Shown: positions 20,158 to 60,500 of the stretch, one piece after another
Layout of the letters: every line of letters begins with the position of its first letter
Position numbering within the stretch: position 1 is the stretch's first letter
Source: Monocercomonoides exilis PA203
Lineage: Eukaryota > Protista > Preaxostyla
Direction of reading: 5' to 3'
Length of the DNA: 64,000 nt
NCBI GenBank assembly: GCA_001643675.2
Contig: LSRY02000033.1
Span: forward strand, 496,001-560,000
Made by a program: the position numbers and the translations under genes
Notes under the pieces: generated by a model
Database searches by the model: none
Seen by the model: only the letters and a program-made list of their open reading frames with translations
Told to the model about the DNA's origin: nothing

Positions 20158-23100
20158 ATGGTATGCAATTTTTTATTGAATCTACAAAATTTGCAATTTA
20201 TGAAACTTTTTTCTGTTTCAGGCATCTGCTTCCTCATCAGGAGGAAATGTCAAGGTTCTTTGTAGGTTCAGACCTTTAAATACACTTGAAATTTCTAAAG
20301 GTGGAACAATATGTGTTGACCTTGCTCCTGACAATCGCAATGTGAGATTAAAGGTTTTCACCTTTTTTCTTTTAAACATTTTTCAATTTTTATTCTAATT
20401 TTCCATAAACAAAACAATTCAATTGCAGATTGCTGGAGGCGATAAAGATTTTACATACGATCATATATTTCCAATTGAAATCACGCAATCAGAAGTATAT
20501 GATGTTTCAGCAAAGGCGATTATTGAAGGTTTAAAATTTTTTGTTGTTTTCTTTTCATGCTCACACTCGATTTTTATAGATGTTTTGAATGGAATTAATG
20601 GAACAGTTCTGGCATATGGTCAGACTTCATCAGGGAAAACATTCACTATGATGGTATGTTTTTTTTAAAATAAACTTTTTAATGAAGAATATTTATTTTA
20701 AAATCTTCAAATTTTCTTTTCTAGGGTCCGGACAATTACAATGAAGCTTCAGCTGGTATTGTTCCTCGAATGATTTCACAGCTTTTTGCTGCGATATCTC
20801 ATGCATCGCGTGAGCTTGAGTTCACTGTAAAAGTGAGTTATATCGAAATTTATATGGAAAGAATTTTGGATCTTTTAGATCGTGTGCTACTTTCTTAATA
20901 AAACATTTTTTATATTTTCCTTACTAAATATTCGACTATTAGCGTCAAAGGGAAGCTTAGATATCCACGAAAGTGTTGAAAGGGGTATATATGTTGCAGG
21001 ATGTACAGAAGTGTTCTGTTCAAATCCATTGGAATTTATGGAACTTCTGAAAAGAGGAGACCAAGGAAGAAAAACAGCTGCTACAGGTTTTCTAAACAGA
21101 ATTTATTTAACACTTTTTAAAGAATGATTCATTCATGAAAAAAATTTTTTTCTCAAATCTCACGATTATTCCATTTATCTATCAATTTTGTAACCTTATT
21201 TGTAATTTCACATTAGGAATGAACGAGCGGTCATCTCGTTCGCACAGTGTGTTTATGGTGACAGTGCAGCAGAAGAATGTGATCAACGGTGCAGTCAAAA
21301 CAGGAAGGCTGTATCTGGTTGATCTTGCTGGTTCAGAGAAAATCGCTCAATCAGGTGCAGAAGGGCAGACACTCGAAGAGGCTAAGCGTATCAACCAAAG
21401 TCTTTCAGGCAATAACTTAGCTTTTTATTCAGAAATTATATTTTTTTATTTTATTATTTTTATTTGATATTATTCTCAATTGGCATATCATTTCTGTTAT
21501 ATCTTCCCTTCTAAAGCACTTGGAAACGTGATCAATGCACTCACTGACCCGAAAGTGAAGCACATCCCCTATCGTGACTCCAAACTGACGCGTATGCTGC
21601 AGGAGACGTTTGGAGGCAACAGTCGCACCGTTCTCATCATCTGCTGCTCTGCTTCAGACACAAACTCAGCCGAAACCCTCTCCACTCTGCAGTTCGGGCA
21701 GCGGGCGAAGAAAGTGAAGAACGAGGTGCGAGTGAATGTGGAGCTGTCGGTGGTGGAGCTGCGGAAGCTTTTAGAGAAAGCGCAGAGGGAGATTGTGTCG
21801 CTGAAGAGCCAGCTGCAAATGGCAGAGCTGGAGCTGTCGCTGTTCCAGGCAGCCAGCGAGAACGAAGGCGGACAGCCAGACGAGGCAACGATGGCGCGCA
21901 TAAGAGAGCTGAGGGAGAACAGGAGGAGGAAAGCAGCAGAGACGGGCACGTCGTCAGCGGGGGGAGGGATTATGGGCGGGGGAGGAGGAGGAGATGATGA
22001 AGAGGATGAGGAGGAGATGCTGTCAGGGCCAGCAGGGATGTTGAGGCAGCTGAGGAAGATGAAGAACCGGATGAAAGAACTGGAGGAGGACAAGATCAAA
22101 TATGAAGATCTGAAGAAGGAGATGCGGGAGCTGCAAATGGCGAAGGACAACATGTTAGACGAGCTGGAGAATGCAGAAGAGCAGGCTATGAACTATCCAG
22201 AGCTGAAGAAGCGGTATGAGGAGCTCACACAAGAACACGCTGGTGCTGCTGACCGGATAAAAGGGCTGAGTGACAACAATGACGAGCTGCGGAGGCAGCT
22301 CAGCCAGAGCGAAGGGCAAAAAGCAGCGCTGGAGAAGAAAGTGAAGGAGCTGATCACAATCATGGGGGCGAATCTGAACGACAAGGCAGTGACAGCTGCA
22401 CTGCTGAAGGAGAAGAAACGGCAGGCAGCGCTTTCGGCACAGTCTTCTGGTGCTGCGGGTGCTCAAAGCAAAACAGGAAAAGCAGACACTTCTGCTTCTA
22501 CGTCTGCCTCTGCTTCTTCATCTGCTTCCTCTTCTGCTTCTGCTTCATCATCCTCAAAGCCATCTGCCTCCAAAGCCGAAGCAGAACAAGATCCCTATCT
22601 GGCATCGCCAATGATGCAGTCAATGGACCGGGCGCTGATTCTGTCGCGTCGCACGTTCATGAAGAAATACAGTTCGAAGGATGTTCAGACAGAGCAATCA
22701 GCAGTGCTGTTGAACCCTCTCTATGACGAGAGAGCGAAAGAGGCGCTGCAGATCAAAGAGAACTTTGAGACGAAGGGAGAGGCGGGTGTGTTGGATGAAG
22801 AAGATAATGATGATAAAGACAATACATTGATTAAATCTGGCAGTTCAACAGGAGAAGCCAAGAAGGATGGGGAAGAAGGGAAAGAGGAGAAAGAGGAAGG
22901 AAAGCTGACTGAAGTGCCTGTGAGTGAGGCAGCGCTGCTGAAGAAGAAGAGGCAGCGAGATTATCTGAGCCCGTTCTTTGCCCTCACATCTGGTTGTCGT
23001 TGTGCCTGGATCTCAGGCAAAGAGCGTTCAGACCGAACATTTGCGCCTTCTTCTTCTTCTTCTTCAGCAACTGGCAGACTGAAGGAGAAGAAAGACGCAA

Positions 23101-26100
23101 GAGATCTCAAAACAAAGAGAACTGGATTGTCATCTTCATCTTCTTCTGCTTCTTCTGCCTCTGCCTCTTCTTCAATGAGCACCCCATCATTTCCCTCGAC
23201 GTTATATCATGGCTCCCCAGCCTCACTTGTAGTGATGAAGAAGAAGTCCTCTTCTCAATTGATTGACTCACTGGACTCGCTCGCAATGTCTTCTGGCTTG
23301 TCTTCTCTCTCTTCGATGGGCGAAGAATCACGCCCGACGTTTTTGTGTGCGAATCTTTGCAGAAAAGTGAAGGATGAAGACGAATTGGCAGCTGAGAAGA
23401 AGGCGAAGGACAAGAAAAGCAAGCTTGGGAAGAAGGATTCTGCAAGCACTGGGGAAGAAGGGAATGACAAGGAAGAAGGCAAATCATTGATGGGTTCTTC
23501 TTCTTCTTCTTCTGCCTCAGCTTCTTCCTCTTCCTCTTCTTCTTCTACCACCTGCTCAATCTCCGAAGCTGATGTGTTCTGTCTGAAGTGCCATGCTCCT
23601 TTTTGCCATGCCTGTTTTGAGGCGTTCCATTCGCGTGGTGCCTTCTCCTCACACACCACACTCGATCTCAACATGTGCTCTCAATCACAACTGTCGCGTG
23701 TTGTGGCGTTCTTGTCGTGCGACGTGGGCTCGCCGGACTCGCACATCTTTGACGATCAGCTGGGGATTGACCCGATGCTGCTGAGGCAGGTGAGACAAGG
23801 AGGAGGAAGTGGAGAAGGAAGTGGAGGAGGAATGGGAGGAGGTATAGGAGGAGGTGGTGGTGGTGAATATGGAGATGATGAGAGAGGGCTGGATGGAGAG
23901 CAGGAGGATCTGGAGAGCCGGATAGAGCGTATGGCGAAGCAGGAGAAGAAGAAAGGGCTGCTGCTGAAGAAGAAGCTGAAAGAAGGAGAAGGGAAAGATG
24001 GAGTGAAGAAGAAGCCATTGAAGAAGTGGGAGAAGCAGAAGCGGACGGAGCTGTCAGCAGACCTGATTCTGCTGCAGAATCTGACGTATCCAGAGAAAGA
24101 AAGAGATTCGATGATGTTTCGCGAGTTTGAGTCGCGTGTGAATGACACACTTTGGTTTGAGGAGCGGCTAAGGCAGGAGAAAGAGGCAGCAGATGTGCGG
24201 GTAATGAAGAAGGAGGAGGCAGTGAAGGAAGAACTGGCGGTGTCGAGAGAGAGGGAGAGGATGATCAAAGTGAAGGAGGAGGAGCTGAGGAAGAGCGAGC
24301 AGCTGTGCAATGAGAAAGAGAGCGAGAAGCAGAGGCTGAAGAAGGAATTGGAGGAAGAAAAGTTGAAAGAGGAGAAACTGATGGATGAATATGGGAAGAA
24401 AGAACAAGAATGGAAGAAGAAGTTTGAAGATGAAGAAGCGAAGATGAAGGCTGCGCTGCTTCTGAAGGACAATGAGAAGGCAGAGGCGAAGAAGCAAAGC
24501 GAAGATGAGCTGGCGAAGATGGCAGAAGCACACCAACAGGCAGTGGAGGAGCTGAAGAAAGAGCACAGGGCGCTTGTGGAGGCGAAGGAGAGCGAGCTGA
24601 GTGAAGTGAGAAGGGTGATGGAGAAGACAGAGCTGCAGTTGAGAGAGACAGAAGAAGAAGTGAGGGAGAAGGAGAAGAAAGTGCAAGAATTGACTGAGGA
24701 ATGCCGTGTTCTGACTGAAAAACTGGAGAAAGCCAAAGAAGAGAGAGAAGAAGAGAAGAAGAGGCACAAGGAAGAGATGGCAGATGCCGAAGCAAAAGCC
24801 GGAGAAACTCTGCTGCAGACAGAGGAGCGGCTGAAGAAGGAGATCGGAGAAATAGAAGAGCGAGTGAAAGAGGCGCGCGGAGAAACTGAGGCGGAGAAAG
24901 GGAAAGTGGATGAATTGGAGAAAGACCTGGCGAGTGCAGAAGAGAAGCTGCTGGTGCTGGAGCATGCGATGAAGGAGAAGGAGAAGGAGGTGAGTGTGAT
25001 GGCAGCAGAGAAGGAGAAGAGCGAGAGAGAATGGGGCGAAGCAATCGAAGAGAAAGAGCGGTTGCTGGAGAAAGAGAGGCAGAGCTGCGAGAAGAAGCTG
25101 AAGGCGCTGGAAGAGAAAGCCGCAAAAGTGAAAGAGGGATTGGAAGAGGAGAAGAAGACGATGGAGGAAGAGATGAAGAAAGCAGCAGATGAAAGCGAGG
25201 CGCAGCAGAATGCACTGAATGCCACGATTGAAGAGCTGAAGAAGTCGATTGTGGAGATCCGGCAGAAGATGGAGGAGAAAGAGAAGGCGATCCAGGAGGA
25301 GAGGAAGGAGACGAGCGAGATGAGGAAGAAGTGGCGGAAGGAAAAGGAAGAGCTGACAAAGAAGACGGAAGATGAGAAAGCAGCACTCACACAGGAAAAG
25401 CGGAACATGGAGGCGAAGCTGCAGAAGGAGAAAGAAGATCAATTGGAAGAGAAAGAGTCAAAAATAGCTGAAAAGGAAGACGAAATCAAAAAGAAGGAAA
25501 AACAGCTGAAGACCGCGCAGGCAGAGCTGGAGTTGCTGAGGCAGACGGTGGCTGACTTGGAGAAAGTGAACAAAGAACTGGCAGTGCAGAACGAAGAGAA
25601 AGAGGTGAAGATGAAGAAAGAACAGCAGAGGTCGGCAGAGGAGAAAGAGGAGATGGAGAAGGAGAGAGAAAGCGAGAGAGTGTGTGCTAAGCAGAAGATG
25701 AATGAGTTAGAAGCACAAAGAACAGCAGTGAATGAGACTCTTATTGCAACACAGGCGTCGCTGGCAGCGCTTGTGAAGGAGAAGAAAGGGCTGGAGGAGC
25801 AAATGGAGGAGATGAGGAAGAAAGAGGAGCAGCTGAATAAAAGAATTGCAGAGATGGAGGCAGAAAACGAGGAAGAGGTGAGGCAGCTGAAGGCGAAGCT
25901 GCAGAACGAGAGGGAAGAGAAGCTGAAAGAGATTGAGAAGGCTAAAGAGGAAGGGAACGAGATGGTGAACCAGATGAGGAAAAGGGTGAGGGATGTGGAA
26001 GAAGAAGCAGAAGAAGAGAGGCAGAAGAGGAAGGAGAAAGAGGCAGTGATAAAGGAGATGCAAGTGGAAAGGGAGGACAATGAGAGAGCGATGAAGGAGG

Positions 26101-29100
26101 AGAAGGAAGAGATGGAGAGAGAAAGAAATGAGAATCTTCAGCTGTTGGAAAGAGAAAGGCAGGTGATGGAGGAAGAGAAGGCGTCTGTGATGAAACGGTG
26201 TGGAAGAGAGATTGAAGAGCTGAAGAGGCAGATAAGCGAGTTGGAAGAAGCGAAGAGGAAGAAAGAAATCGCACTGAGCGATGCGGAAGAAGCGCTGAAG
26301 GAAGAAACGCAGGCGAAGGAAGCGATTGTGAAGGAGAAAGAGGAAGAAGAGGAGAAGAAGAAGAAAGAGATTGCGAAGATGAAGGAGACGCACGAGAAGG
26401 AGAAGAAGAAGGTTGTGGAGGAATATCAGTCGAAGCTGAAAGAGATGAAAGATGAATTGGATGCGACGCAGAAGGCGCTGGATGAAGCAAAGCATCTTTT
26501 GGAGGAGAAAGAGAAGGTGCTGTTTTTGGAAGGGAAAGAGAAAGACGAGTGGAGAGAAAAGACAGAAGATGAGATTTTGCTGATGCGAAGGGAGTTGGAA
26601 GAGGCGAGGCAGAAACACGAAGAAGAACACCAGAAAGCACAGGAAGAGGCAGAAAGAGCAGTAAATGAGGCGAAGAAAGAGGTGAAGAAGAAAGAGAAAG
26701 AAGCGGCAGAGCTGGCAGCTGAGATGGAAGAGGCGCAGAACAAACTGAATGAAGCTGAGCAGGCGAAGAGGCAGCTGGCGAAGGAGATTGAGGCGAAGGA
26801 GGTGCAGATACATCGTCTGGAGGAGACATTAAAGGAAGAGGAGAAAGAACTGGAAGAGACGAAGATGAAAAGCAGCATGATTGTGGAGAGCCAAGTGAGC
26901 CAGATGAAGGAAGAGCTTGAAGGAGTGAAGAAGTCGCTGTCAGAAGCAGAAGCTGCGTTGGAAGCGAAAGAAAAAGAAAAGCAAAAACTGATTGAGCAAA
27001 AGGAGGACGACACGAAGACGCTGCAGCAGACGCAGAAGGAGCTGGAAGCGCTGAAGACGGCGGTGGAAGAGGAGACGGAGAAGATGAAGAAGAAGTTGCA
27101 GAGGGAGAAGGAGAACATGGCAGAAGAACTGGCACATTCAAAGGCAGAATGCACACACCAGGTGGAGTTGATGAAGAAGAGGGTGAAGGAGATGGAGGAC
27201 GAGGCAGACGAAGAGAGGAAGAGAAGGAAAGAGAAAGAGGTGTTGTATCGAAAGCTGGAGGAGGAAGTGGATGTGAAGGAGACGCAGCTGAAGAAAGAGC
27301 GGGTGGAGATGAGGGATCAAAAGGAAGAGATGGAGAGGCTGTTGAGCGAGGCAATCACAGAGAAAGAGAGAGAGAGAGAGGAAGCGCAGAGAAGAAGAGC
27401 GAAGGAGAAGGAAGAAGAAGAGGAAGAGAAGGAGTCGATGCGAAAGAGCCACGAAAGAGAGATAATGCTGCTGAAGGAGAAAGAGGAAGAGCTGGAAAAC
27501 GAGAAGAAGAAGAAAGAGGAAGCGTTTGGGGTGGCAGAGCAAAGGATGAAGGAAGATATTGCATTGCTTGAGAAGCAGCTGAAGGAGGCAGAAGACGAAA
27601 GAGAAAGACTAACACAGGAGCTGCAGACAGTGAAAGAGGAGAGAGAGAGAAAGAAAGAAAAGGAGAAGGAGAGGATGGAAAGGACAGCCAATGAGGCAGA
27701 GAAGGAGATGGAAGAGCTGAGAGAGAAGATGGAGGCGATCAAAGCCGAAACGACAGAGCACATCGAAGAGATGGAGAAGGAGATTGAGCTACGGGATGAA
27801 AAAATAGCAGAGTTGTCAGCACATCTGGCAGAGACGCAGGAGGCGAACGACACGATGAGCAAAGAGAAAGAGCTGGTTATTCGTCGACTGAACAGCGAGA
27901 TTGAGTCGCTTTCTGGACGACTGCTGGCTGAAAAGGGGCAGCTGGCAGAGCTGACAGAGAGGGAGATGAGAGAGCTGAGAGAGGAATGTGAAGTGCTGCG
28001 GGAGCAGATGGAAGAGCAGGCGAATCTGAACGGAGAGAAAGAGGCAGCGAACAAGTCGCTTCATTTGCAGATTGAGCGGATGGAGAAGAGTCTGAAGGAG
28101 GTGGAAGAGAAGAAGAATGAGCTGGAGAAGAGAGAGGAAGAGCTGCAGAGGACACATCTGGAGGAGAAGAAGAAGCTGAAGGAGGATCAGCAGAAGGCGG
28201 TGAAGGAGGCGGATGAGCTGAGGAAGAAAGAGGAAGGGCAAAGGAAAGCAGCAGAGGAAGAGAGAGAAAAGGTTCGAGCACGGTTGAATGAAGAAGTGGC
28301 GAAGATGAAGCAGCTGATGGAGCAGCTGAAGGAGAAAGAAGAGTCGATAGAGAGGATGGCAGCAGCCAATGAAGAGCTGGGGAAGAAGAAGAAAGAGGCA
28401 GAGGAGAGGGAGATGGAGCAGATGAGTAAAAGGAAAGTGATGATGGAGGAGCTGAAGAAGAAAGACGAGGAGCTGTTTGAGCTGAAGGAGAGAATAAAGG
28501 ACAAAGAGAAGTCGATGAATCTGGGAGAAGAGGAGAAGAGCAAGCTGGGCAGAGAGATGAGAGAGAAAGAAAGGCGCCTGGAGAGAGAGAAAGAAGACCT
28601 GGCGAGGCTGCTGCAGGTGAAGGAGAGCGAGAACGAGGAAGCAGCAAACAAGCTGAAGAAGAAAGAGGAAGAGCTGGCGGCGCTGAGGGAGGACACAGAA
28701 GAGCAGCGGAAGAAGCTGCGGGCAGTCAACACGAGCCAGGCGGAGCTGAGTGAGAAGATGGAGCAGCTGAACGAGTGTTTGGAGAGGGAGAAGGCGCTGA
28801 AGGAAGAGGAGAGCGGGCAGAAGGAGAACTTGAAGCAGAAAGTGAAAGAGTTGGAGAACAGAGGGGCAGAGCTGAAGAACCAGCTGGAGCAGATGAAGGC
28901 GCTGTGTGAAGAGCAGAAGCAGCAGATGTCGCAGCTTCAGTTCAAACTGGGTGCAACTAATGAGTCTCTGCAGTTTGCACAGGAAGAGGCAGAGAAAGAG
29001 AAGGGCAGGGCAGCCGAGGACAGGAATGCGAGCGATGTGAGAGAGGAGAAGCTGAAGCAGCGGGTGCTGCTGTTCACAAAGAGGGAGGGAGAGTGGCTGC

Positions 29101-30275
29101 TGCGTGTGATGCGGGAGAAGAACCGGGCGAGAGATGCAGAAGAGGCGCTGAAGGAGGCCGAGGCGCTGAAGGCAGAAGTGGAAGAGCGATGGCAAAGAGA
29201 TCAGCAGACGTACCAGCAGCTGATCGGGAAGATGAACAGCGATCTGAATGCAGCAGTGAAGAAAGTGCTGGGCTTGGAGATGAGCATCACAGCACTCACA
29301 GACACGAACAAGGCGCTGTGTGAGTCGAATAAGCTGGTGACGTATGCGCAGATGGGCACAGACATTGGAGACCAGCTGCTGAGGAGAGAGAAAGAGAGGA
29401 TGATGGAAGAGGCAGGAGGGGAGGGAGAGAGAGAAGGAGAAGGGGTGTTGAGTAATAATAATAACAACAATAATAATGTTAATAGAAATACAAATGGTAA
29501 TGAAGACAGAAACACGAATAAATACACATCTGCTATTTCACGAACAGCCACTCCTTCATCTTCATTGATGAATAATTCAACAACTTCATCATCTTCCTCC
29601 TCCTCGTCATCATCTTCTTCTCAGTCAGAAGAGTCGAGCAACATCGACATTGTGGTGCAGCCTCTGAAGCGCCGAGTGATTCAACTGGAGTCCTCATTGG
29701 TGGAGATGAACAGCAATCAGATCGAACTGAGCAGACAGAATGTGCAGCTGAAGGAGCTGAAAGAGGAAGTGGAACAGAAATTGAGTGTGTATGAGAGAAA
29801 ACTGGAAGAATTGGAAGATGCTTTGTTCGATGCGATGATGGAGAACCAGTCGCTCCGCGCGCAGATCGAAGAAAGAAGCAACACAGCTTCTCTTTCTCAC
29901 TCTCCCTCTGCTTCTCCTTCTCCTTCTCCCTTAGCTCTGCCTCTTCCATTCATGTCTCCCTCATTGCGTTCATTTGCTCCTGTGGCAAAGAGAGCATGTG
30001 GAACTGTCTCTACGCCCTCCTCTGCTCTGCCATCGAGAACGACTTCTCCCTCACTCAGACCTTCTCCTCAGACATCCTCTTTCTTCAGCTCGCCCAGCCG
30101 CCAGACATCTCCATCTCCGTCTCCTTCGCTTTTCTCGTTTGCTGCTTCTACTTCTTCGACTACCTCTTCTGCTTCTTCCTTCTTTTCCTCTCGCCCTATC
30201 GCCTCCTCTCCCTTTGTCTCATCCATCGGACTAACTTCATCTTCTCTTAATGGATCATCATCATCAACAACATTG

Positions 30276-30307
<32 letters not shown>

Positions 30308-30845
30308 CATTCAAAAGCCTCTTTCTCTCTCTCCTTCTGTTTCTGCCTCTTTCCATCCGCTTCCGTTTCTGGCGATTGCTGCAGCGCATCACAAACAAGC
30401 AGAAACATCTGCGCCTGTTGAGACGCCCCTCTCACGTGCTCAGTCACCTGCACTGTCTAGTTTGATATCTTCTGCTTCATCATCATCATCATCTTCTTCT
30501 TCTTCTTCATTTTCTTCTTCTTCCTCTCAGCAGTTATTACCAGCACTTGAGACAGCATCGCCAGATGTACCTACTCCTTTGGTTGTGTTTGCCACTCATC
30601 CTCTGTCGCAATCAGCAACAGACTCTTCTTCTCTTCCTCATCATCTGCAGCCTCCTTCTCCTTTATCTCCTGCTTCTTCTACATCTTCCACATCTTCTTC
30701 TTCTATTTCTTCTTCCTTCTCTTCCTTCTTTTCACACACCAGCACAGTTGAGAGTGCTGTGCCTTCTCTCCCGTCTTCTCGCTTTGTTCCAAAAGTTCCT
30801 GTTTCTTCATCTCGCTGGAAGAAAAAGAAGCTATTTCTCTTTTGA
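20158..30845 (+). CDS. Kinesin-1-like heavy chain, ~3,350 aa: N-terminal motor, B-box Zn finger, ~1,900-aa coiled coil, Ser-rich tail
   Basis: [13 protein letters not shown]-loop [21 protein letters not shown], switch I NERSSRSH, switch [19 protein letters not shown], and a KIF5-like neck [19 protein letters not shown]. The motor is split by several short introns; the terminal exon is 21517-30845. Confidence 0.92.
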
Positions 30846-36720: not shown

Positions 36721-36972
36721 AAGATGAAAACAAAGAAATTCTTCACGTGTTTGCAATTATTTGACATGCTCATAAAGTATATTTTTCGTCGAAAAATGCG
36801 AATTAAGTATTATCATCAAATTTTCATTTTTGCACACAAAAATTTAATGGAAAACAAATAATAACATCACCAAGTTTTTGTTTTTTATTCGTAAATTTTT
36901 GTGAATTTTAATGATATTTTGATGATAATATTAAAGTTTTATGTTATCTTACAAAGAAAACATTATGAACTT

Positions 36973-37227
36973 GGGTGATTATTTATGAAATCATATTATT
37001 TTATTCAAATTTTTCTGTTCAAAAATATCCTTTGGATAAAAATAAATGAATACAAAAGAGTGAAAAGGCTCAATAAAGAATTATTTATCTTTTTTTCAGC
37101 TGATTCACTTATCCTTAATGCATTTGTGAAAAATAAAGAATTTGAATTCAAAAGCTTTTACCAATAACAAGCAGAATTTGAAAAAACAACACACCGAAAA
37201 AAGTTATGATTTCAAAAATAATCACCC
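36973..37227. mobile_element. MITE-like element, 255 bp, 23-bp TIR
   Basis: GGGTGATTATTTATGAAATCATA at 36973-36995 and its inverse TATGATTTCAAAAATAATCACCC at 37205-37227 (1 mismatch). ACTT flanks both ends. A further copy of the right end lies at 38310-38332. Confidence 0.6.
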
Positions 37228-39061
37228 ACTTTTTGAAAATAATTCGACATGATAAAGATGTTTTTGGTATTCAAGGCGAAGAAGACACAGACGAAGAATT
37301 TTTATTTCCTGAATACAAGAGCACAAAACCTTTCGGATATGAAACAGGAGAGGTATTTTAAGAATAAAAACAATTAATGATATTTTCTTAATTATCTTAA
37401 TTAATAAATCAAAAAAATCCATGTTAACACACTTTTTCACAGATTATTTCACTTTGAATATTAACAAAAACATCAAATGGAACAAACTCATAAATTTGAA
37501 AATCATATCAGATTGTTTGTTTTATTTGCATTTATGAAACATTATCTTTTCTTTAATTCAATTGGCTGATTAGATAGATAAAGGAACATAATGAAGATAT
37601 TTCGAAATCTGAATAAATACGAAACTATTATTATCAGATAAAAAAAATCGAATTGATAAATTCAGGTAAAGAATTGGTTGATTAAATCATTTTAGCGAGT
37701 ATTTTTTCATTTGAAACTATTATTATTTTTTATGAAAAGTTTGAAGAGGTTTTATTGGTTTTTAAATGAAGATATATATCTTGAGAAGTGGAGTGATTAA
37801 ACAAAACAAATGTATTTGCGTTTAATATAGGAATTTTCAAAACTTATTTGAACTTATTCATTTGATATTTATATGATTATTAATCATCATTATTCGTGTT
37901 TATAATCATCGAAAATTCATAATTGCAATTTTCAAATTTTTGTATGAAAAATGTCAATTTCAAGTTGTTACGGGTTGCGATAAAAATTGATTCATTGAAA
38001 TGCCAATGCCAGATCTACAGATAATGAAGACTCACCAGTTGGATATTGTTTTCACAGACAAAGACGGAGAGTGGACATGGGTAATTATTAATGAAACCAT
38101 ATTTTCTCTGTCAAAACTTTCGATTCTTAAATTTCACTTGAATAAATATTATTAATCAATGAAAAGTAAATAGTCATATTCAAAACATAATCTTCTTTAT
38201 TTTTGCTGATTCAATTATTTTTTAACATTTGAAAAGAATAAATCATTTGAATTCACAATCTCATCCCAATGACAAACAACCTTTGAAGAATCAACTCTCC
38301 GGAAAAAATTATGATTTCAAAAATAATCACCCACATGGTTTAACGAGAATGTTCTGAAAACCGAAGCGAAAATGTGCGTCCGTAGCAGAAGAAAAATGAT
38401 TGTTCTTAAAGGCGAAAAGTTTTACAGATATTGGTACTGTTCAAAATGCAATAGAAAGAAATTTGTTTATGATGAAACAGTTTTCTCTGGGAATAAATTA
38501 GGATTAGAGAAGGTTTTTAGAATCATTTTGTGGTATTGGGAAGTATCAAATATAAAGTTCATTTCGAAAATGCTGGGAGTGGATAATAAAACTATTGGAT
38601 TTTTTTGCAGTGTCGTTGGAGTTTCCAGTATGGAAATTTGGAATTTACTTCAAAACCCAATAGGAGGAGAAGGAAAAGTGGTCGAAATTAATGAGGCTGT
38701 GCAGAGAATGCGAAAATACAGATGGGGAAGAAGAAAGGAACAAATTTGGATATTTGGTGGAATTGAAAAGTTGAAGAGAAGAGGAGCTGGCACTCGTAAA
38801 GTTAAAATTGTTCCTAACAAAAAGATAGAAACCCTTCTTCCCGTTATTTTGGAAACAATTCGAAGCCGTTCACAATTATGAGCGAAGAGTGAAAAGCACA
38901 CTCTCCTTTGGATTAATGCATTCACACTCATAAAACTGTTTGCCACAATAGAAATTTTGTTGATCCTGTTTTGCGAGCATTCACAAATACGATAGAGGGC
39001 TTGTTGTGTGCATTGCGCAAATCATTCCCTCAGTATGGAGTGAGAAAATCATTGATTGCAG

Positions 39062-42000
39062 TAGACCTCTGTGACATGACAAAAGAAAATTGAAACAATG
39101 ACAAAATGACAGACATGATTATCTCAATTTGTCATTTTTTTGAATCAGATAAAATTTCCAATTTATGAAGCAGTTTTTGAAATGATAGAAATATTTATAA
39201 TTTTTTTATTTTAATAATAATATTGTGGTCAATATTTTTGAATAATCGAAAGAAAACTGTGCATTTTTTCATGTTTTTTTTTTTCTTGTGACAAAAAGAT
39301 CAAAATTAATTATTGTGGTTAGTCATTCGTCTGATCTGTCACTGACAAGTCAATTCAGTCATTTTGTCATTTTGGAAAACTCTCCTTAATTCAAGCTGAA
39401 ATTGAATAGCTTTTGCATTTTGCATATTTCTGAGAAAAATACTCATTTGTCACAAAATGATCTGAATAGATGAAATGTTTTTTATTTGATTGTTTAATTG
39501 GGCTTTTATTGTCTTTGAAGTGTTTTTTGAAAAGCATTCATGTTTTTTCTGTTGAAGCTTCAATTTTTATTTTGCATTTTTTGAAAACAAAGAGGAATTT
39601 GCTTTGCTCTTCGGAGCTTTCATCAATCTAATCAAATATTTTGTTTTTTATTGCCTCTGTGGAATAGAACACTGAAATAAATAAGTATTAATACATAAAT
39701 GCTTTTATTCACATATCAAACGATATTCAACGTTCGTCACTTTCGATACTACACAACTGTGATATTTTTTTCAATTAACAGAAATCTTTGTTTAATAGAC
39801 AATTTTTTTTCAGTTATCAACGTTAAATGAACAACAAAATTTTTATTAAAAATATATTAAAGAACCTTCCTTTTGGTTGTTCATGCTAAAAAAAAATAAA
39901 ATAAATTCTTTGGAATGGATGATAAGATTCATTGTTATCATCTCAAATACAAACCATTTCTTGTTCTTTAAAATATTGATAAACATTCAATCTTCCAAAT
40001 TCCTTATCTTTGCCTCTGTTTTCTCACTTCTATGAAGCAGCATGAATAGCGAATCCCTCAAGTCCACAATCAATTTCTCATGAGGCGATGAGCATGCCAT
40101 TGCATCCACCAGATTCGACATGGACGAAGTGGTTGGACACAGATCCTCCCCACGAACAAATGTTGAATCTGAATCTGTTGTTGAAGTGGTGGAAGTGGAT
40201 GAAATGGATGGCGAAGGAGTTCGTTTCCTCGTCTCTTCTTCCTCCTCCTTTTCCAATGCCCAATCAGGGATCTTGTCTGAGTCTTTTCCCAAGATGTATT
40301 CTGTTGAGCCACTCTCAGAGAGAAGATGTTCTGATGATTCTGAATGTCCTAAGCTTTTCTCATACACCCTCTTCTTCATCCTCTCTTCATTCTTCTTTTC
40401 AGCTTCTCTCTCTGCTCTGCTCCACCTCTCTTCAGGTGACATTTCCATCGTCATCATCTCAATCAGCTTCGGGTCCTTTCTCACCGTATCCTCCACAATT
40501 ATCTCCAATTCTTCTGTTCTTTTCTTTTGCTTTCTCCATCGAACAATGAATATCACAGAAATTATTAGAACAATCAACAATATCACAACTAATGCCCTTA
40601 ATGATTTTCCATCATTTCCTCCTTCAGCAATCTTTTCTTATCTTTTTAATTTAGATTCACTCCTGTTCTTTTCAATCAATGATTCTGTTGAAGTTGATAG
40701 CTTGGAGTTGTAAAAAAAGCAGATATGCTAACGTCTCAACTTCAGCTGGCGACTCTTGAAGAACGCCTGCATGAAATTTTCCAAAGGCATCCATTTTTTA
40801 GGCAAACATTTTCGCATCAAGCTCATGTCCATGCAGCAGGGCCTCAGCTACCGTGGTTGTTTCCAATCAGAATGACAAATGGTGTTGACAAATGAGCTCT
40901 CCTTGAAAATCCTTCAGACATTGCTTATATTTTAACTTTTCGTTGCTTCATTTTTTGATTCTTTGGCAGAATGAAAGGCTGTGATGAAGAAGAGTAATTG
41001 TCTTTGGCAGGAGATGCTAACAAGTTTGTTTCCGCTGGAAAGCATCCATATGGAGGCGTTGCCCTTCGCACCGAATACTCCTTTCAATAAAGCCAGCTTC
41101 AGAGAAGCCACATCAGAGCAGGCAATGTTTTGGCGGGAAGATGGATTGCTGCTATCTGAATGGCTGTAGCTAGCAGAGGGACTGTAATCTTCATGTTTTA
41201 CATCATCCTTTCTGATTATGCATCCAGAGGAAGACAACTGTTTTCTTGCCTCGCTTGCAGATGCGAAATTGTTGATGGAAGTTGTTATGCTTGTTCATAT
41301 TTTTCATAACCGAAAAATGGGGCACATTGCAAGCAGGTGCAATTGGATAGGTCCACGTGGGCAGACGTAAAAGACATTGAAAATACTGGTCAATTAAAGA
41401 AGGCATAGGTGCTAGCGATTGTGTTTGCGTTGTTGCGGAAAGATGAGCCGGAAAAGGAAATGTCTCATGTGGCAGTGGTAGGGAGACAGAGGATGCTGCC
41501 CTGTGAAAACACCAGACGCTCGGCTGCCAATCTGTGTGCCAAGGCGCTCTGGCACTGGTGGAACTTGAAGGCTCCGGCTGACAGCTGGAGGCGCTGAAGG
41601 TTTATGTTTGCGAGGGCGATATGGTTGGAAGCGGAGAGGAGGAAAAGCAGAATAGCGAATACGAGTTGTTGGATTGAGCAGTTGTTGACAGTCAATGGCC
41701 TCTCTCGATGGCTGGCAGGAAGGAATTGAGGAGTTCTGGATGAGCAGATGGCAAGATAGCTGAAGAAGAAAACTGGTCAAAGGAGAGCGGAAGGCGATAG
41801 AAGGCGTTGTGCACAACAGCGCTTCCTGTGTGCAAGAAGGGCAGACTGGAGAGGAAGTCGAATCGTTCTATCCAGGCATTTGCAGAGGTTGAGATGATAT
41901 CGAGATTGAGCTGGATGGCTGGCTTGAGGTGGACGAGCGCAGAGGATGTGAACTCCATCAAGCGAATTAATATTAACAGTGGTTGTTTTGTACGTAGCGC

Positions 42001-43042
42001 AAATGGCTTTCTGGAGCTGCACCAACACCTGGGAGTATTGAGACAGAATGATGTATTGCACCCCCTTATTCTGAAACTCACAGAGCTTGCGAACTTTCCA
42101 CATTACCTGCTATTTGCATGATTGCCTACCATGGAAGACACAAAGATCGTCTCGATCTTGTAATTCATGACTCTTAATAAAAGATCTTCTTTTCACACAA
42201 ACAAGTCTGACGTGCAGCCACGTAACGCAAGCTCTTTCACAAATAATAATCTGAAATCCAGCAAGAATTGCACTTCAACTATTCGTTCTTCGGTCTTAGG
42301 GTACGTTATATACACGTTTCCCACTCTGAATGTAAGTAATCAGTGAATGAGATATTTTATAAAGCAAATGCAACTGGCTCGGTTGTCGCAGATGTGAACT
42401 TTACAAACAAGCCGCACCCTTTCTTGAGGATATGCAGAATTACTCCGTTATTGTTGAAAACACATAATCAAAGCACCGTCCTTTCTGAAATTTGAATAAA
42501 AAAGTCTTTCTATCTCAACAGATAGATTTTCCACATTTTTGGTTCTTGTTTTGTAGATGACCATTTTTGTTGCGTCAACACATGTTCTTCAGAGCAAGAC
42601 GATGCTGTTAATTGCCATCTTAGTGACTTTCTCAAATATGATTCATCCAACCATGATATTTCCATCGTCATTATCATTCGCATTCTAATTTTTGGCAAAA
42701 GCCTTTGCAACACTTTATCAACTTCCTTTTTCGAGCTTGATGCTTTTCATTGAAATGCTACTAAATGAAAAGGATTACGAAGATGATAATGGCATTATGA
42801 TACAGAAAAAGGAAAGTATATGCATAGTCACAAACTTATCCAAAACTGCATTAACATCTGCTTTGATAATCATAAAGTTTATAGTTTCTTCTTTTCTTTT
42901 TTCTTAAAAAATTTTAAACATTTTTTAACAGTCCTTTCCATGCTTTTAGAAAAATGATTTGAAATATTAATTTTATTTATGGGTCACTCTGATCAAATTG
43001 ACCGACAAGTAATTTTTCATTTTGTCACGTCACAGAGGTATA
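39062..43042. mobile_element. Non-autonomous TIR DNA transposon (hAT-like, Pack-type), 3,981 bp, with 8-bp TSD GATTGCAG
   Basis: Left end TAGACCTCTGTGACATGACAAAAGAAAATT; right end reverse complement TATACCTCTGTGACGTGACAAAATGAAAAATT. GATTGCAG at 39054-39061 and 43043-43050. Subterminal TGAC/GTCA clusters; no transposase ORF visible inside. Confidence 0.9.
39900..42880 (-). pseudogene. Decayed fragment of the beta-helix/TM/pseudokinase receptor family, carried inside the TIR element
   Basis: ORF 39987-40586 (TM plus cytoplasmic segment) is nearly identical to the 61.4-62.0 kb part of gene 54589-62736. The upstream part shows frameshifted ectodomain motifs (NPSSRQNIACSD vs NYPSARRNIICSD). Confidence 0.85.
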
Positions 43043-43855
43043 GATTGCAGATCATTTAGCTATGTTTCTGGTTAAAACTTCTTTGAAATATAAATTTCAA
43101 GATATTTCACCAACTATCGTTAAGCATAAAGCAGTGGAAAAGCCAGTGGAAGGTCTTGCGGAAGAGGAAGCGGAAGATGAAGATTCCGAAAATTTTCTAA
43201 TTGAAGATATTTCGAGAGAAGAAGAAACTGAAGAAGAATCGTCAGTGCTCGAGACAGAAAAAGAAAAAATTTTTGATTATTAACCATAATTGAGTGTTTT
43301 TTTTTTTGTTTTTTTCTCATTTTCAGTTTTTCATTCACACACATTTCCGATAATTATGAACATGAATAATGATGATTAATAATCATATGAATTACAAATG
43401 AAAATGTTTAAAGGAGTTTTGAAAACTCTCATATGGTACCCTTATACCAAAATCTTAGCATTTAGCGTTTAAGTTGAAAAAAATGAAATGAATAAAAATT
43501 TCAAAGTTCAAAAATTATCAACAAAAGTTGGTCGTTTAAAAATTGCTGAAAAATGATTGATAAAATAAACAAAAATCATTTTATCTTTACATAAAGAAGC
43601 AATGGAGCAAAATACAAACAGAGACAAAGAAAGGAATAATAAAGAAGAAGAAGAAGAAGAAGAAAGCTCAATGTTAAAATGGATGTTAAAAAAGCACAAG
43701 CTTGCTCAAATTACAAAAGAATAATTTGAATCTTGAATGTTAAAACAAAGACAAGTTCTGTTTAACAATTGACTCCATAAATAATACTCTTTCAATAATT
43801 ACAGTTAATTTTTCATCAAAATACTAAAACAAAAAAGATATTTCCAGATTACTTA

Positions 43856-45395
43856 CTAAAAAATTTTCGCAAAAACGTAGTAAAAAGTACGTCGTTCATG
43901 AAGAAAAATTGATGTTGGATGAGAATCATAAAGATCTTCCAATCCATTCTCCTCCAAAGCATCATATAAAACAATTGAGGATTTGTGCGCTTCTGAATTA
44001 CCATGCAAAAATTTTTGTTGATTTTCAAACACACAATCACCCAAATGCTTATCAATCAAGCTAATCATTGATCTGAACGCAAATCTCACATTGTTATTGT
44101 CTATTGCTTTAAAGACGATGCCACAAAATATATCGCAAAAAAGAGGAAGAACTTCAATTATACTTGGTTCGCTATTTGACACGCTCCAATTACTTACAAT
44201 AAAAAGAATTTCATTGTCAAGCGATCTGATTTGGATATTTTCGAGAAACCATTTCAGCAATAATGTTACACATTTCACATGAGGAATATCAACTTTAACT
44301 TTCAAATCATTAATAACATGTTTAATTGCGAATATCATCCGCTTGAACAAATCAACATGCTCGGAGGTGACTGAACGCCGACTAATTGGCGTAAAGTCAT
44401 CAAAGATTGACAGCAGTTTTTCGTCCTTTTCCACACACATTTCTTGTTGGCTTTTCTGACCCTTTCGCTCAAAGAAGTCAAATGGCTTTTGCGTAAAACA
44501 GCATATTGTCTTCTCCATCAAAATTGTGCAGCATTCTGCAAAAGCACCACTCAGCCGCTCACCCCTGTTCACCCGCGAAACGTACTGATACAACTCGAAC
44601 ATGCATTTACATGAAAAAAAAGGATTCTTATACGCAGCCTTGTTGAGTAAAGATATAAGATCCGAAATAAGTTGAAAATTGCCATCGCGAGGCGGATAAA
44701 CTTCAAAATTAAAAAAAAAAAAAAAGCAAAGACAAGATTGCAAAAACATTTTTTAAAAAAGAAACTTCATACCACTAAAGCTACGTGTCATTATTGGTAA
44801 AATGTGTGTTTCGAAATCTTTTGATTCGATGTTAATTTCATGGCGAAGGAGTGTCATATAGCTATCCCAAATGGATTTATCTTTAATCGCACAATCAAAG
44901 TATTGCGGATGTGCAAATAAATAAATCACAATCAACTTGTTTTTGCTTTCGAATTCTTGAGTATTCTCAACCAATGAAACATATGAGTAAGATCGAAATG
45001 CATTATGCATTCGTATTTCCAATTCGCTTTTTTCCTCATATTTTGCTTTTATCGCCTTGTTAACTAAAGTGTAAATAATGTCAAGTGCTAGGCGCTCATC
45101 TGCACTTCGTAACCCCCCAAACAAGCCAACAAAATTCACAAAAAACGTCTGCGGAAGGTCTCTCACATAATCGCGGCAGTTTCGGCACCGAACATATTTT
45201 TCGAAAAACAACAACGTTTGGTGCCGCTCTTCGTTTGAAGAGCCGTGGATGCTGTCAACATAATCTGTTTCAGCAGAAAATCATCATTCCAAAAATATCA
45301 AGCAAAACCAAACCGCTTATCTTCATCGGCTTTTCATTTTCAAATCGTTTCTTTTTAAAGGTTTGATGGTGATTTACCGGTCTTTGCCGCTGCAT
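43856..45395 (-). CDS. Hypothetical alpha-helical (ARM/HEAT-like) protein, 3 exons
   Basis: ATG 45395 (MQRQRPVNHHQ...KIS) splices in frame to DYVDSIHGSSNEERHQTLLFFEK (ORF 44753-45214) and then to VYPPRDG (ORF 43856-44749) through phase-consistent GT-AG introns. Confidence 0.65.
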
Positions 45396-54588: not shown

Positions 54589-57500
54589 ATGAACATTCAT
54601 CAATTCCACATAATTTTGACAAAACTTGTATTAACATTAACATTTGCATTTGCTTTTGAAGTTTTCTCGCTTCAACCCATTCATGGCACACACTTGTCTG
54701 CTCGAAATGTGATTGATTCACACTCACAATTTTGCCTGAAACAAAATCTTTGTCAATGCACATTCTTGTCCACCAAAACTGCAGAAAACACTCTGCACAA
54801 GCCTTCTCAGCCAATTCATCAAAAGCGCAGTTCAGTTTCTTTGGAAAATTCATCATTCACAATTGCAGGATTAAATATCGAATGTCAATCACACAACTCA
54901 TTCATTGAAATTGATGGCAAATCGCAATGTGAAATGGGGAGAGTAGTTCTCCTGCTTGAGCAACAAAATTCATCACCCTTTGCATCATCTGGGTTTTTGC
55001 TGTTTTGCAACACAACCCTTGCACATGCTGGGCTGCCACATGAATTGTCGAGCAGCCTTGTGTGTGCATCAGGGAACAGCCACACCCGCTTCAAGGGTTG
55101 CTCTTTTCATGCTCTGTCCCACCTCCACCCTCACCCATTTCTTGTTTGTGGTGCTGCCTCTTCGCTCTCCCTCTCAGACTGTGTGTTTTCCAACATCACA
55201 TCCCCTGCCCACGCCTCCACCCAGCAACACCCAAACCCATGCTTCGGGAGCTGTGATGTTGCCAGTTGTGTATGCGATGTGGCAACAGACCCGCTTTTCT
55301 CCATTTTCCCACTCTATCTCACAAGCCACTCGTTTCGATCCTTCAACAGCTCATTCTCCAGGATCTCGAACAACAAGATCACAAACAGAACTGTCATCGA
55401 GTCTTCGGATGAGGAGGAGATTGTGTTTGAAGATGATGAGTTTGAGGTGAGTGAGACTGCATATGATGGAGGTGCTCTTTATGTAAACGATGCAAACAAA
55501 TTGATCATTGAAAGATGCAGATTCTCTCATTGCTCCTCCCAACACTACGGAGGAGTATTATATGCCAACAACATTAAAACACTCCAAATCTCCAAGTGCA
55601 ACTTCTTCAATTGCAGTGCAGGGGTTGATGCTGGATCATTTCGCGTTTATGGATCGGAAAGTGTTTTGATTGAAAATTGCTTGTGCTCAGAATGTCATTC
55701 AAATAGCCATTATGGATGTGGAGCTATTTTCGACAGCAAAATTTCTGTTCTTTGTTCGAACAATTCATTCTCTCATTCTTATGCAAAAGGCGATGCAGGT
55801 GGACTGATAATAAGAAATACGAACATACACACTATTATTACAAGTTGCATGTTCAACAACTTAACCGCTTCATGGTGCGGTAGTGCTTATGTATTTCACC
55901 AAGTTACATCACCCGTTGCACCACAAAGCAGGTTTCTGTTTTTCATGAACAACACTTGCACAGATCAGTATTCGGGGGCAGACTTTGGGTGCTGTGAGGG
56001 ATGGGACGGGGTGGTGAACTCCACGCACTTTGAGCACTGCTACTCGCTCAGCACAGGCATCCGCAGCTTTGTGTGCACGGCCGGCTTCCGCCCCTGCACC
56101 GCCGGCTACGAGGCCGACTTCATCCGCGCCCCGACCTATTCCACCATCCATGTGGCCCAGCCTGCCCGCGCCTCGGGAGGCGACACGCCCCACTGTGGCG
56201 AGCTCGGCAGCGAGTGCGCCACCATCGCCCACGCTCTCACCAGACTCGCCCCACCTGCCCCAGATGCCTCAGATGCCCCGCAGCCAATCGCCGTCCTCCC
56301 GGGGTCGTACCAAGAGCCGGGCGTGGCAGTGGCCCAGACACACATCCGCATCAGCAGCAAAGACCCAGCCAGCCCGGCCGAGGTGCGGTGCAACACCACC
56401 GGCGCAGTGCTGTTTGCCACAGCCAGCGGCGCGCTGGAGCTGGCGCAGCTGGTGCTGGTGGCCGACTGGGGCGTGTGCCCAGCCACCCCGCTGCTGGTGC
56501 TGGACGGGGACGAGGGCGCAGTGGCTGTGGCCGAGTGCACCATCACCGGCGCCGGCCACTCGGCTGCCAACCGGTTCCGCTCGCCGGTTGTTGTGCTGCG
56601 CAGAGGGGCAGGGCGGATCACCAGATGCACCGTCACAGCGCTGGTGCTGGACAGTGCGTGTGCAATCTGGGTCGGGAGGCGCTGCGCTGCTGCTGTGGAG
56701 TGCACTGTGTGTGCACACATTGTGCGATCCTCGGGGTGCGGGGGAGCCATTGTCCTCGAGGAGGAGGAGGAGGATGGAGACAGCAGTGCCAGTGCCAGTG
56801 CCAACACAAACGAAGGGGATGCTGCACAAGCGATATCTGGGTGTGTCTTTGAGGACTGCTGTGCAGAAGGGGATGGGAGTGGCGGTGGGGCAATATGCGC
56901 CAGGCTCCGAGGCAGAGGCTGCTTCACAGTGAACGCGTCAGCCAGCTCGGGGTGCACCCTGCCTCTTGTGCGCCATCACAGCCACAACAGCAACACCACC
57001 AGAGCCCCTCGTGGCACAAATGGCGGCGATGATGGGAGTGGAGGCGAGGCACTGTTCAGCAGGTGCAAGAGCAGCGGATATGGCGGGGCGGTGTATTTGG
57101 ACTTGGCCGAGGGCTTCGGCACACTCCTGCTGGACGGGGTTGTGTTTGGTGGCTGCGAGGCTGCGCTGGGAGGCGCCAATGTGTTTGTGAACGGGTGCGC
57201 CCTCACCCCGGCCGAGATCAGCACCTCCACCTTCTGCTTCCCCTTCGACCAATCCTCTGCCGACGATCTCGTGGGTGTCGATCGCGCGCTGCCAGAGGTT
57301 GCCCCGTTCACCCTCGCAGTGTTTCTTGTCCCGTTCCCATGCGCTGCTCATGTGGCTGGCCAGTCCTCCCGCGCATCCAACACCCCCTTCTGCGGCTTTT
57401 CCTTCTTCCCCTGCCTCACCATCCCCCATGCTGCCCGCACCCGCTTCCCCGCTGCTGACCCTGCCATCCTGCTCGATGAGGGCTTCCAGCTCTGCGAGAG

Positions 57501-60500
57501 GCTTGCTGCCGATGCACATGCTTGGAGCATCTCGTGTGTGCGCAAAGGGATGGAGGTGCCTGTTGGTGCGCCTCCGGGCTTTTCGTCGCCCTCGCTCGTC
57601 GCAGTCAGCACCGAGGCAGCCATCGCAGACATCCGCTTTGCTGTGCCGGCCTCGCTCGGCTCAGCCACAGCCCTGGTCGAGGTGGCAGGGGCTGGCAGCC
57701 TGCAGATGGCCAGCTGCAGCGCTGTGCACAAGCGCGACGGAGCCACAGCACCTGGCGATGGCAGCGAGGAGCAGCTGACCTTCGCGCTGATCGCTGTTCG
57801 CTCGGGGAGGCTGGTGCTGAGCGAGTTCGAAACACTGGGCGAGGTGGCGAGCACGATGTTTTCGCTGATGGAGTGCACAGGGAGCAGCAGCGTGGTGGAG
57901 TGCAGCGGGTGTGTGATTGGGGGTGGGGAGAAGGGGAGCGGAGACGGGGGGTGTGTGAAGATGGCCGGGGTGGGAGGAGGCGGTGCAAGGCTGGAGATGG
58001 AGAACTGCACAGTGGCGAGGTGCAGCGCCAGAGGCAGCGAGGCCAGAGGAGGCGGCGTTGCGGCCGAGCTGGCAGCCGGGGCAGCCCTGCTGATAAACGG
58101 CTCGACCTTCGAGGACTGTGCAGCTGCTGCGGCGGCTGGCGGAGGCCAGGCACAGACCCATGGCCTGGGCGGCGCGGTGTTCGTGGGGGAGGCAGATGCC
58201 GCCAGGCTGTTTGCCCTCGAGCACGTGGTGTTTGCCAGATGCGATGCGTGGAAGGGCAGAAAGGTGTTTGTGTCCGCCACCGTGCTGTCCGCAGTGGCTG
58301 ATGCCGCCCATTTCAACTGGGCCATGACCAGCGCCGACCTCAGCACCCTCGACGAGCTCGGCGGATTCGAGCTGGCCACAGCCGATCCCAGCCGCCCCAT
58401 CCCGCTTGCCGTGTATTTCTGGACCAACATCACCACCCACGTGTTTGTCGACGGAGACACAGGCTTCGATTTCAGTGCATGCGGGCACTCTGCTGCTCCC
58501 TGCCTGACCATCCCTCGCGCCCTTTCCCTCAGGCTCACCCCGCTTCCCCTCCCCTCCTCCACCCTCTCCATCGCCTCCCACTCCTCCATCCCCGAGCCTC
58601 TCGTCCTCCTCCTCCCCCCTGCCCCCACCTCCCCCTCGCCCACCTCCCTCCCGTCTCTTCGCCTCCACGGCTGCGCCCCAGACACCCCGGTCCACATCTC
58701 CGATCCCACACCCAGCCAATCCGACGCCCTCCTCGCCTCTTCTGTCGACCTCGCTGTCGACGCCATCTCCTTCCTCCTCCCTTCTGCTTTCCCCCACCAC
58801 TCCTCCTTCATCCTGACATCTGCCCCAGACGCTGCTCTCCTTTTGCAGCGCTGCTCCTTCTCCATGCTCACCCCCCAAACACCCCTTGCCTATGTGATCG
58901 TGCTGGCAGCACAAGGCCGTGTGTCTCTCGACCACTGCACCCTCGCCTCCGTGTCCTTGTCGCGCCCTTTCCTCGAAATTTATGATGCATCCACTTCTGC
59001 GGCACTCACATCCCTCTCGGTCTCCTCCTCTTTGCTCGCTGGCGCTCCCCTCGTGGCCATCTATCCACCTGCTCTGGCTGCTTCGACTGGCTTGGCTGGC
59101 TTGGCTGGCTTGGCTGCCCCAGACCCCAGGACAGCCATCGTTCTGGACTCTGCCAACATCACCAACATCGTGCGCACAGGCAACGGGCCGGCTCTGGTGT
59201 GTGCAGAGAGGGGATGTGCCATCGACTGTGCTGCCGAGGCGTGTGTGCTCACCAGCTGCGTGAGCGAAGAGTCGGCCGAGGGCGGAGCCGCAATGGTGTG
59301 CCTCGACTGCGACAAGTCGCAGCTGCGCGTGTCGGCGTGCATCCTCACCCAGTGCATCTGCTCCCGCACAGCCGGCAGGGGCGGCGGCCTCTTCCTCGAC
59401 TGCTCCCGCCCTGCTCGCGCCCTTCCCATCCCCCTCTCCATCCTCAACCTCCGCTTCGCCCTCAACGACGCCTTCCGAGGAAAGGACCTCTTTCTCCGGT
59501 GCTCCTCCATCCCCGCCCAGATCAACGAGTCCCTCTTTTCCCTCGACTTCACCCAGCCCTCTCTCGCCACCAACACCTCCATCTGCGGCTCCGACTCCTC
59601 CCCCACCGACCCCGACCTCGATGTCGACCTCGATGTCGACCTCCTCCCCTTCATCACCTTCTACCGCGCCCACCAGATATTCGTCGACCAGGACACCGGC
59701 TCCTCTGCCCGCCAGTGCGGCTCCCTGCTTGCCCCCTGCGCCTCCCTCTCCACAGCCGTCCTCCACATCGCCCCTTCCATCGGCAACATCCTCTGGATCT
59801 GCTCCTCCTCCTCCGTCGACGCCCCGACCTCCCTTGCCGACATCCGCGTCGAGTCTGTCTCTGCGAGTCTTGTCCCTGTGCACTTCGCCACCCCCATCCC
59901 CATTTCTTCTGATCTGTCTTCAGACCGCTCTGCTGTTGTCGCCTTTCTCAACACCTGCATCCTCACCCACTGCCACTTCTCCTTCCACACCTCCTTCGCA
60001 TCTGCCCACTCTTCCCTCTTCTCCCTCCTCGACGGATCCCTCACTGTGTCCTCCTCCCTCTTTTCCGCAGCCGACCAGCCTGTCAAGCTCAACTCCACCC
60101 TCCTTTGTGCTTGTCGAGGCACCCTTCGCCTCTCCAACATATCTGTCCATTCCCTCCACCTCGCCTGCCCTGCTCTTCGTGCTCTCCCCGCTTCCTCCCT
60201 CTTCCTCTCCCACGCCAACCTCTCTGCCCTCAGTGCTGCCTCCCCCGTGCTCCTGCTCGACGATGGCTCCAGCTGCTCCATCGAGCATCTCATCGCCACA
60301 GATCTTGCTGTCACAACGGGCAGTGTTGTTCTTCTCAATCCCCCGGCCAATCCCCCTTCTTCTTCGTCTTCCTCTTCTTCTTTCGAATCAGATCAGCCAG
60401 AAGGCTCCTTCAGCATGATGCACTCCATCTTCACTGCCATCTCGCTCGCCCAGCTCGGCTGCAGCGTGTGCCAGTGCAACCACACCACAGCCCCAGTCTA

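Follow-up and report, generated by a model that had tools for sequence, protein, structure and literature searches.

Capture of host-gene sequence by hAT transposons is an event of a known kind, documented in plants, frogs and fungi. Pack-hATs, which belong to the Pack-TYPE elements, are known in maize and rice (PMC8903248), multicopy Pack-TIRs such as Pack-hAT-N8_XT of Xenopus have been described in animals (PMC8277862), and in Pseudocercospora fijiensis and its relatives a hAT element amplified a captured histone H3 gene, the carried copies of which are inactive (PMC6710886). Members of the superfamily have 8-bp target site duplications (TSDs) and short terminal inverted repeats (TIRs) of about 10-25 bp (PMC3942097). 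For Monocercomonoides exilis, the genome papers describe a large kinase family that overlaps with unclassified repeats (PMC6759080, PMC8767320). Both the sequence discussed here and the gene at 54589-62736 belong to this tyrosine-kinase-like family, and in the passages searched its members are not described as transposon cargo. A limited literature search returned no report of gene capture by hAT elements in oxymonads.

Here we describe a hAT-type element of 3,981 bp (39062-43042) on contig C29 of M. exilis, found within a window of 64,000 nucleotides, the whole stretch of DNA that was analysed (Table 1). C-numbers denote contigs of the M. exilis assembly, and the genome searched comprised 82.3 Mb in 101 contigs. 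The element is a clean further case of Pack-hAT capture. Like the maize and rice Pack-hATs it is a non-autonomous hAT with TIRs, an 8-nt TSD and captured gene sequence, occurring in multi-copy clusters, but its host is a metamonad protist, one very large family is the source of the cargo, and that cargo appears to have been re-templated after capture. As with Pack-hAT-N8_XT, one captured piece recurs at several sites where the TSDs differ, a sign of transposition after capture; the piece carried here, however, is a dead stretch of coding sequence of about 2.9 kb and is older, its copies differing by 14-34%. The H3 hAT of P. fijiensis is similar in that a captured host gene was amplified and the carried copies are inactive, and it also parallels an autonomous, cargo-bearing hAT family of M. 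exilis with 923-aa transposases. There, however, the transposon made hundreds of copies, whereas the M. exilis family is large independently.

That the element is a real cut-and-paste transposon without a transposase was confirmed. Its TIRs are 28 nt long and 86% complementary, with 21 of the outermost 23 bases matching, and no longer inverted repeat was found in 38000-44000. The 8-mer GATTGCAG is identical on both sides, a match expected by chance with a probability of about 3e-5. TGAC/GTCA motifs are enriched in the first 420 bp of the element (14 against 2.0 expected, P 3e-8) and in the last 120 bp (4 against 0.6, P 0.003), while the middle is at background (17 against 16.5). When the translated interior was compared with proteins, no transposase was found within 39062-43042, and a decayed transposase was rejected as the identity of the middle part, which is receptor ectodomain. 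The first-pass annotation had described imperfect TIRs of about 30 bp, an exact 8-bp direct repeat on both sides, subterminal TGAC clusters and no visible transposase, and each of these features stands.

Table 1. Coordinates of the element, its cargo and its insertion target in the window
Feature	Position	Strand	Remarks
Merlin (IS1595-type) target, left part	37825-39053	+	arm 37825-37916; transposase pieces 38327-38878 and from 38917
Left TSD copy, 8 bp	39054-39061		exact repeat; empty sites have a single copy
Left TIR	39062-39089	+	19-mer with 127 matches genome-wide, control 0
Long arm with TGAC/GTCA clusters	39062-39600	+	resembles the C8 sister (83-95%) and, less closely (about 70%), 11 or more other arms
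AT-rich spacer	39600-40030		present at C29, C8 and C11 only
Intact cargo block	40030-40640	-	217 codons without stop or frameshift; helix about 40542-40595, then juxtamembrane part to start of pseudokinase
Broken distal ectodomain	40641-42903	-	many stops and frameshifts; 86% like C45:156617-159641
Short right arm	42904-43042	-	right TIR 43015-43042 at its end; outer 67 bp 79% like the C8 sister
Right TSD copy, 8 bp	43043-43050		exact repeat
Merlin target, right part	43051-43434	+	transposase frame continues to 43280; arm 43343-43434

Repeated subterminal motifs are characteristic of the hAT superfamily, and its transposases have a C-terminal dimerisation domain and a DDE triad with a CxxH motif. 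An 8-bp TSD, short TIRs and subterminal motifs are all present here, and hAT genes adjoin related ends, so that the type proposed at first pass is supported. The ends belong to a group of more than 120 termini, most of whose pairs, as read, are MITEs of 460-550 bp (about 480 bp); 10 of 18 distinct paired ends have an exact 8-bp TSD, and two more have one with a single mismatch. The genome holds over 100 PF05699 candidates, many within 900-aa frames. On C21, a TIR nearly identical to the element's right TIR lies 540 bp upstream of a frameshifted hAT-type ORF, which has its PF05699 match 3.1 kb in and the 900-aa PF05699 frames as its homologues; judged by eye, this ORF has candidate D, D and CxxH motifs, and the C-terminal halves show an E motif. 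The N-terminal hAT piece had no Pfam or PDB match. Pairing of the C21 end with a TIR 7.8 kb away was rejected, the TSD test having failed. Further arms, about 70% like the left arm and placed by coordinates, are found 4-7 kb past hAT genes on C12 (twice) and C62, so that together with C21 and C44 related ends adjoin PF05699 genes on four contigs, and the related TIR of a sister family brackets hAT genes at no fewer than six sites. In searches for PF05699 and PF12762, hAT was the only transposase type adjoining these ends; Merlin is the target, not the carrier. The hAT label is well supported, the ends read being related ones rather than those of an intact partner with exactly these ends.

Several further elements came to light in these searches. 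The hAT copies with the related TIR (C6:270802-277689, C8:223642-232250, C8:1518597-1523276, C9:872484-880918, C17:140227-149474 and C17:608865-616870) have a constant 5' part and 3' parts of 1.4-5.5 kb, which suggests variable cargo or nested insertions. About eleven elements of 2.8-3.5 kb with another TIR variant and no hAT match inside occur on C15, C16, C17, C36, C38, C45 and C62, and an 869-bp element at C23:102808-103676 has the same end type at both sides.

The cargo runs on the minus strand from 42903 to about 40030, some 2.9 kb, and is colinear with the part of M. exilis receptor proteins that begins about 1,290 residues, and ends about 240 residues, short of the C-terminus. It contains the distal ectodomain, the membrane helix, the juxtamembrane part and just a few opening residues of the pseudokinase region. 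Near 40030 the receptor sequence is fused to the AT-rich spacer, from which the final 14 codons of the cargo frame and its stop (39987-39989) come. The first-pass reading of a minus-strand receptor piece of about 3 kb thus holds for its extent and colinearity, but the pseudokinase is almost wholly absent. The gene at 54589-62736, which the same annotation had taken as the intact representative, is of the same family, although its ectodomain belongs to another subfamily than that of the cargo. The 120 best homologues of this gene are all M. exilis proteins; HRD is absent from all of them and DFG is present in two, so that the term pseudokinase seems fair and the family appears catalytically dead. 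Against the fragment on C45, mismatches in the cargo ectodomain are spread evenly over the three codon positions (85/95/101), pointing to neutral decay. By its sequence, then, the cargo is a dead passenger, a pseudogene fragment of a giant receptor-pseudokinase gene. The C45 fragment was rejected as the donor: it is itself dead, has no TIR and starts within about 20 bp of the cargo boundary, and it may be a stripped sister of the element. It also contains an insertion of 1 kb whose inverted arms, 380 bp each, are 89% alike. The exact donor gene was not found; copies of parental type do exist outside elements (more than 1,100 candidates). With host-gene sequence between its TIRs, no transposase and copies of the parental family elsewhere, the element is of Pack-TYPE or Pack-TIR kind, in line with the Pack-type cargo first suggested.

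A sister copy of 4,249 bp at C8:1092205-1096453 has its own exact 8-bp TSD, differing from that of the C29 copy. The two are 86% identical across their opening 1,087 bp, a stretch that takes in the arm, the spacer and the identical fusion point, and the junction of arm, spacer and receptor is common base for base to C29, C8 and C11, with a simple repeat in place of the arm at the capture junction on C11. Beside the C11 junction copy lies a run of simple repeat, followed by reverse-transcriptase/RNase H-like fragments. The same arm-cargo junction with different TSDs shows that the unit moved after capture, as the first-pass annotation had expected of copies with the same cargo and different TSDs; nor do all other TIR-bounded copies lack receptor sequence, which it had named as part of a ground for refutation. 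The same capture with different TSDs is also what characterises multicopy Pack-TIRs. Four more copies, on C14, C17 (twice) and C35, were recognised by coordinates, with a related arm and related receptor sequence at nearly equal spacing and, in three of them, a facing TIR. Cargo-bearing elements of this group measure 3.6-5.3 kb. We infer that at least six copies go back to a single old capture, those four being placed by coordinates only.

Taken as a whole, it is very probable that the locus is a non-autonomous Pack-hAT with a history of old capture, mobilisation in trans, insertion into a Merlin element, death of the cargo and later overwriting. An old ancestor would have taken part of a receptor-pseudokinase gene between its arms, its own transposase having been lost or never held. 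A hAT transposase, presumably acting in trans, would then have moved copies by cut-and-paste to six or more scattered sites, and the C29 copy landed in a Merlin transposase gene. Pieces of the cargo may later have been overwritten through ectopic recombination or template switching in gap repair, as the patchy identity suggests. More than 1,100 homologous templates would allow such overwriting, and this would be why the sisters carry sequences of different paralogues and why the best-conserved block looks fresh.

Between the sisters the arms are 83-95% alike but the cargo is far more divergent: outside the first kilobase, which they share, the cargoes of C8 and C29 are no more than 45-70% alike, and the far breakpoint at C8 is different. 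This points to overwriting by paralogues, and overwriting from intact paralogues is the simplest reading of the membrane and juxtamembrane block as well. The rival to it is selection, with the block maintained as a truncated, kinase-less receptor piece that is functional now or was so recently. Such a reading would fit the 217 codons free of disablement (4.8 expected, P about 0.003) and the concentration of differences at third positions, both against intact genes and against the C11 copy (13/17/56). Third-position bias is, however, also expected if a different intact gene overwrote each copy, and the expected count of disablements is perhaps inflated by assembly indel errors. Moreover, the helix has no start codon or signal upstream of it, the upstream ectodomain is destroyed and the C8 copy has a 236-bp deletion in the block, which makes selection improbable. 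A bolder extension of the preferred overwriting is that hAT elements serve as mobile reservoirs in which a conserved receptor block swaps sequence with intact genes in both directions, similar to the pseudogene archives that feed surface-antigen variation in other protists; we regard this as doubtful.

Could the elements nonetheless have served as an effective route for the spread of the receptor family by carrying usable genes or exons to new places, the strong form of what the first-pass annotation had suggested? The family is the largest receptor gene family of M. exilis (assigned to PF07714, tyrosine-kinase-like), and most of its more than 1,100 candidates have open frames of 2,000-4,200 aa. 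Cargo-bearing copies did move, as C8 and C29 attest, and at 9-10 sites the separate family of 923-aa hAT transposases also has receptor pseudokinase sequence, located about 1 kb beyond the stop codon of the transposase. In that family the receptor piece, convergent and cut at one common point, would lie inside the element; five close copies have transposases 92-97% alike and receptor parts 62-81% alike, repeating the contrast of arms and cargo seen between the C29 and C8 sisters. Every cargo read is broken, though, the receptor frame of the autonomous copy on C91 reaching only 285 aa, and elements of the size given above are too short for intact genes with ORFs of 6-12 kb. Nor do the receptor loci sampled lie between such TIRs: none of 149 other family matches lay inside the TIR pairs listed, in a comparison of incomplete lists by eye, and none of 25 ordinary loci had an enclosing TIR within 1.5 kb. 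Instead, about 13 inverted local pairs among 150 family matches, 2.5-55 kb apart with equal scores and often consisting of one long and one short frame, point to segmental duplication, and inverted local duplication is the likely main route of family growth. A spreading role is therefore not supported and is, in our judgement, decidedly improbable; the element did not build the family. Such elements might still have had some share in shuffling sequence among paralogues. Elsewhere in the genome, two hAT copies 99.9% identical stand back to back in mirror orientation at C50:456257-465674, and the window itself contains, at 21480-30845, a 3,121-aa ORF with a B-box-like match and a strongly skewed purine-rich stretch at 24000-29000.

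Single-copy Pack-TIRs of animals usually originate by transposition-independent gap filling (PMC8277862), and the cargo here might likewise have come after insertion, if a double-strand break in a MITE or cargo-free element already present was repaired with receptor-gene sequence. The present dissimilarity of the cargo to that of the C8 sister would agree with this. The junction shared with C8 and C11 speaks against it and, together with the differing TSDs, largely refutes it. In addition, the arm is not that of the 480-bp MITE, which it matches over 58-73 bp only, and within the window no family gene lies closer than 11.5 kb, the nearest one belonging to another subfamily. We therefore consider arrival of the cargo after insertion very unlikely at this locus, although the idea survives in part as the later overwriting of a cargo captured earlier.

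The C29 copy is inserted in a Merlin transposase gene. Once the element and one 8-mer are taken out, the reading frame is open again through the insertion site, and the surrounding unit is bounded by inverted arms of 92 bp. The joined empty site has 13 paralogous matches in the assembly (4 exact and 9 near-exact, against none for the control), and the coincidence of four of the 13 with PF12762 matches identifies the target as a Merlin transposase gene. An empty joint from 39053 to 43043, with 8 letters in common, was seen in three read sets, at a depth above single copy in two of them; given this depth and the four exact empty paralogues, the joint does not count as evidence of excision, and it is explained by paralogous Merlin copies. 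All internal junctions of the element are crossed by read contigs at single-copy depth, and the right end is crossed by a read contig with 30 letters. Chance pairing of unrelated ends, or an assembly join, might be suspected as MITE ends of the same group are common and the left end has no spanning contig among the read contigs listed, but the exact TSD, the empty paralogous sites, the restored Merlin frame and the contigs over all internal junctions make it extremely unlikely. The Merlin target measures about 1.6 kb, and PF12762 candidates in the genome number up to 575. Repeats from other MITE-like families, short and AT-rich, occupy 36800-38340, including a 134-bp palindrome near 36803-36934 and a 266-bp unit at 36966 and 38072.

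In summary, this element extends Pack-type hAT capture to an amitochondriate metamonad. It does not explain the expansion of the receptor family, but it helps explain the published overlap between kinase genes and unclassified repeats in M. exilis and gives warning that the annotated kinase genes of this organism include some that are dead cargo. With arms that are conserved and cargo that is exchanged, the elements offer a convenient marker for measuring ectopic recombination within a family of 1,100 members. What deserves genome-wide attention is the exchange of sequence between the cargo of elements and intact genes: if the elements did act as reservoirs, they would feed mosaic receptor alleles or kinase-less membrane forms.
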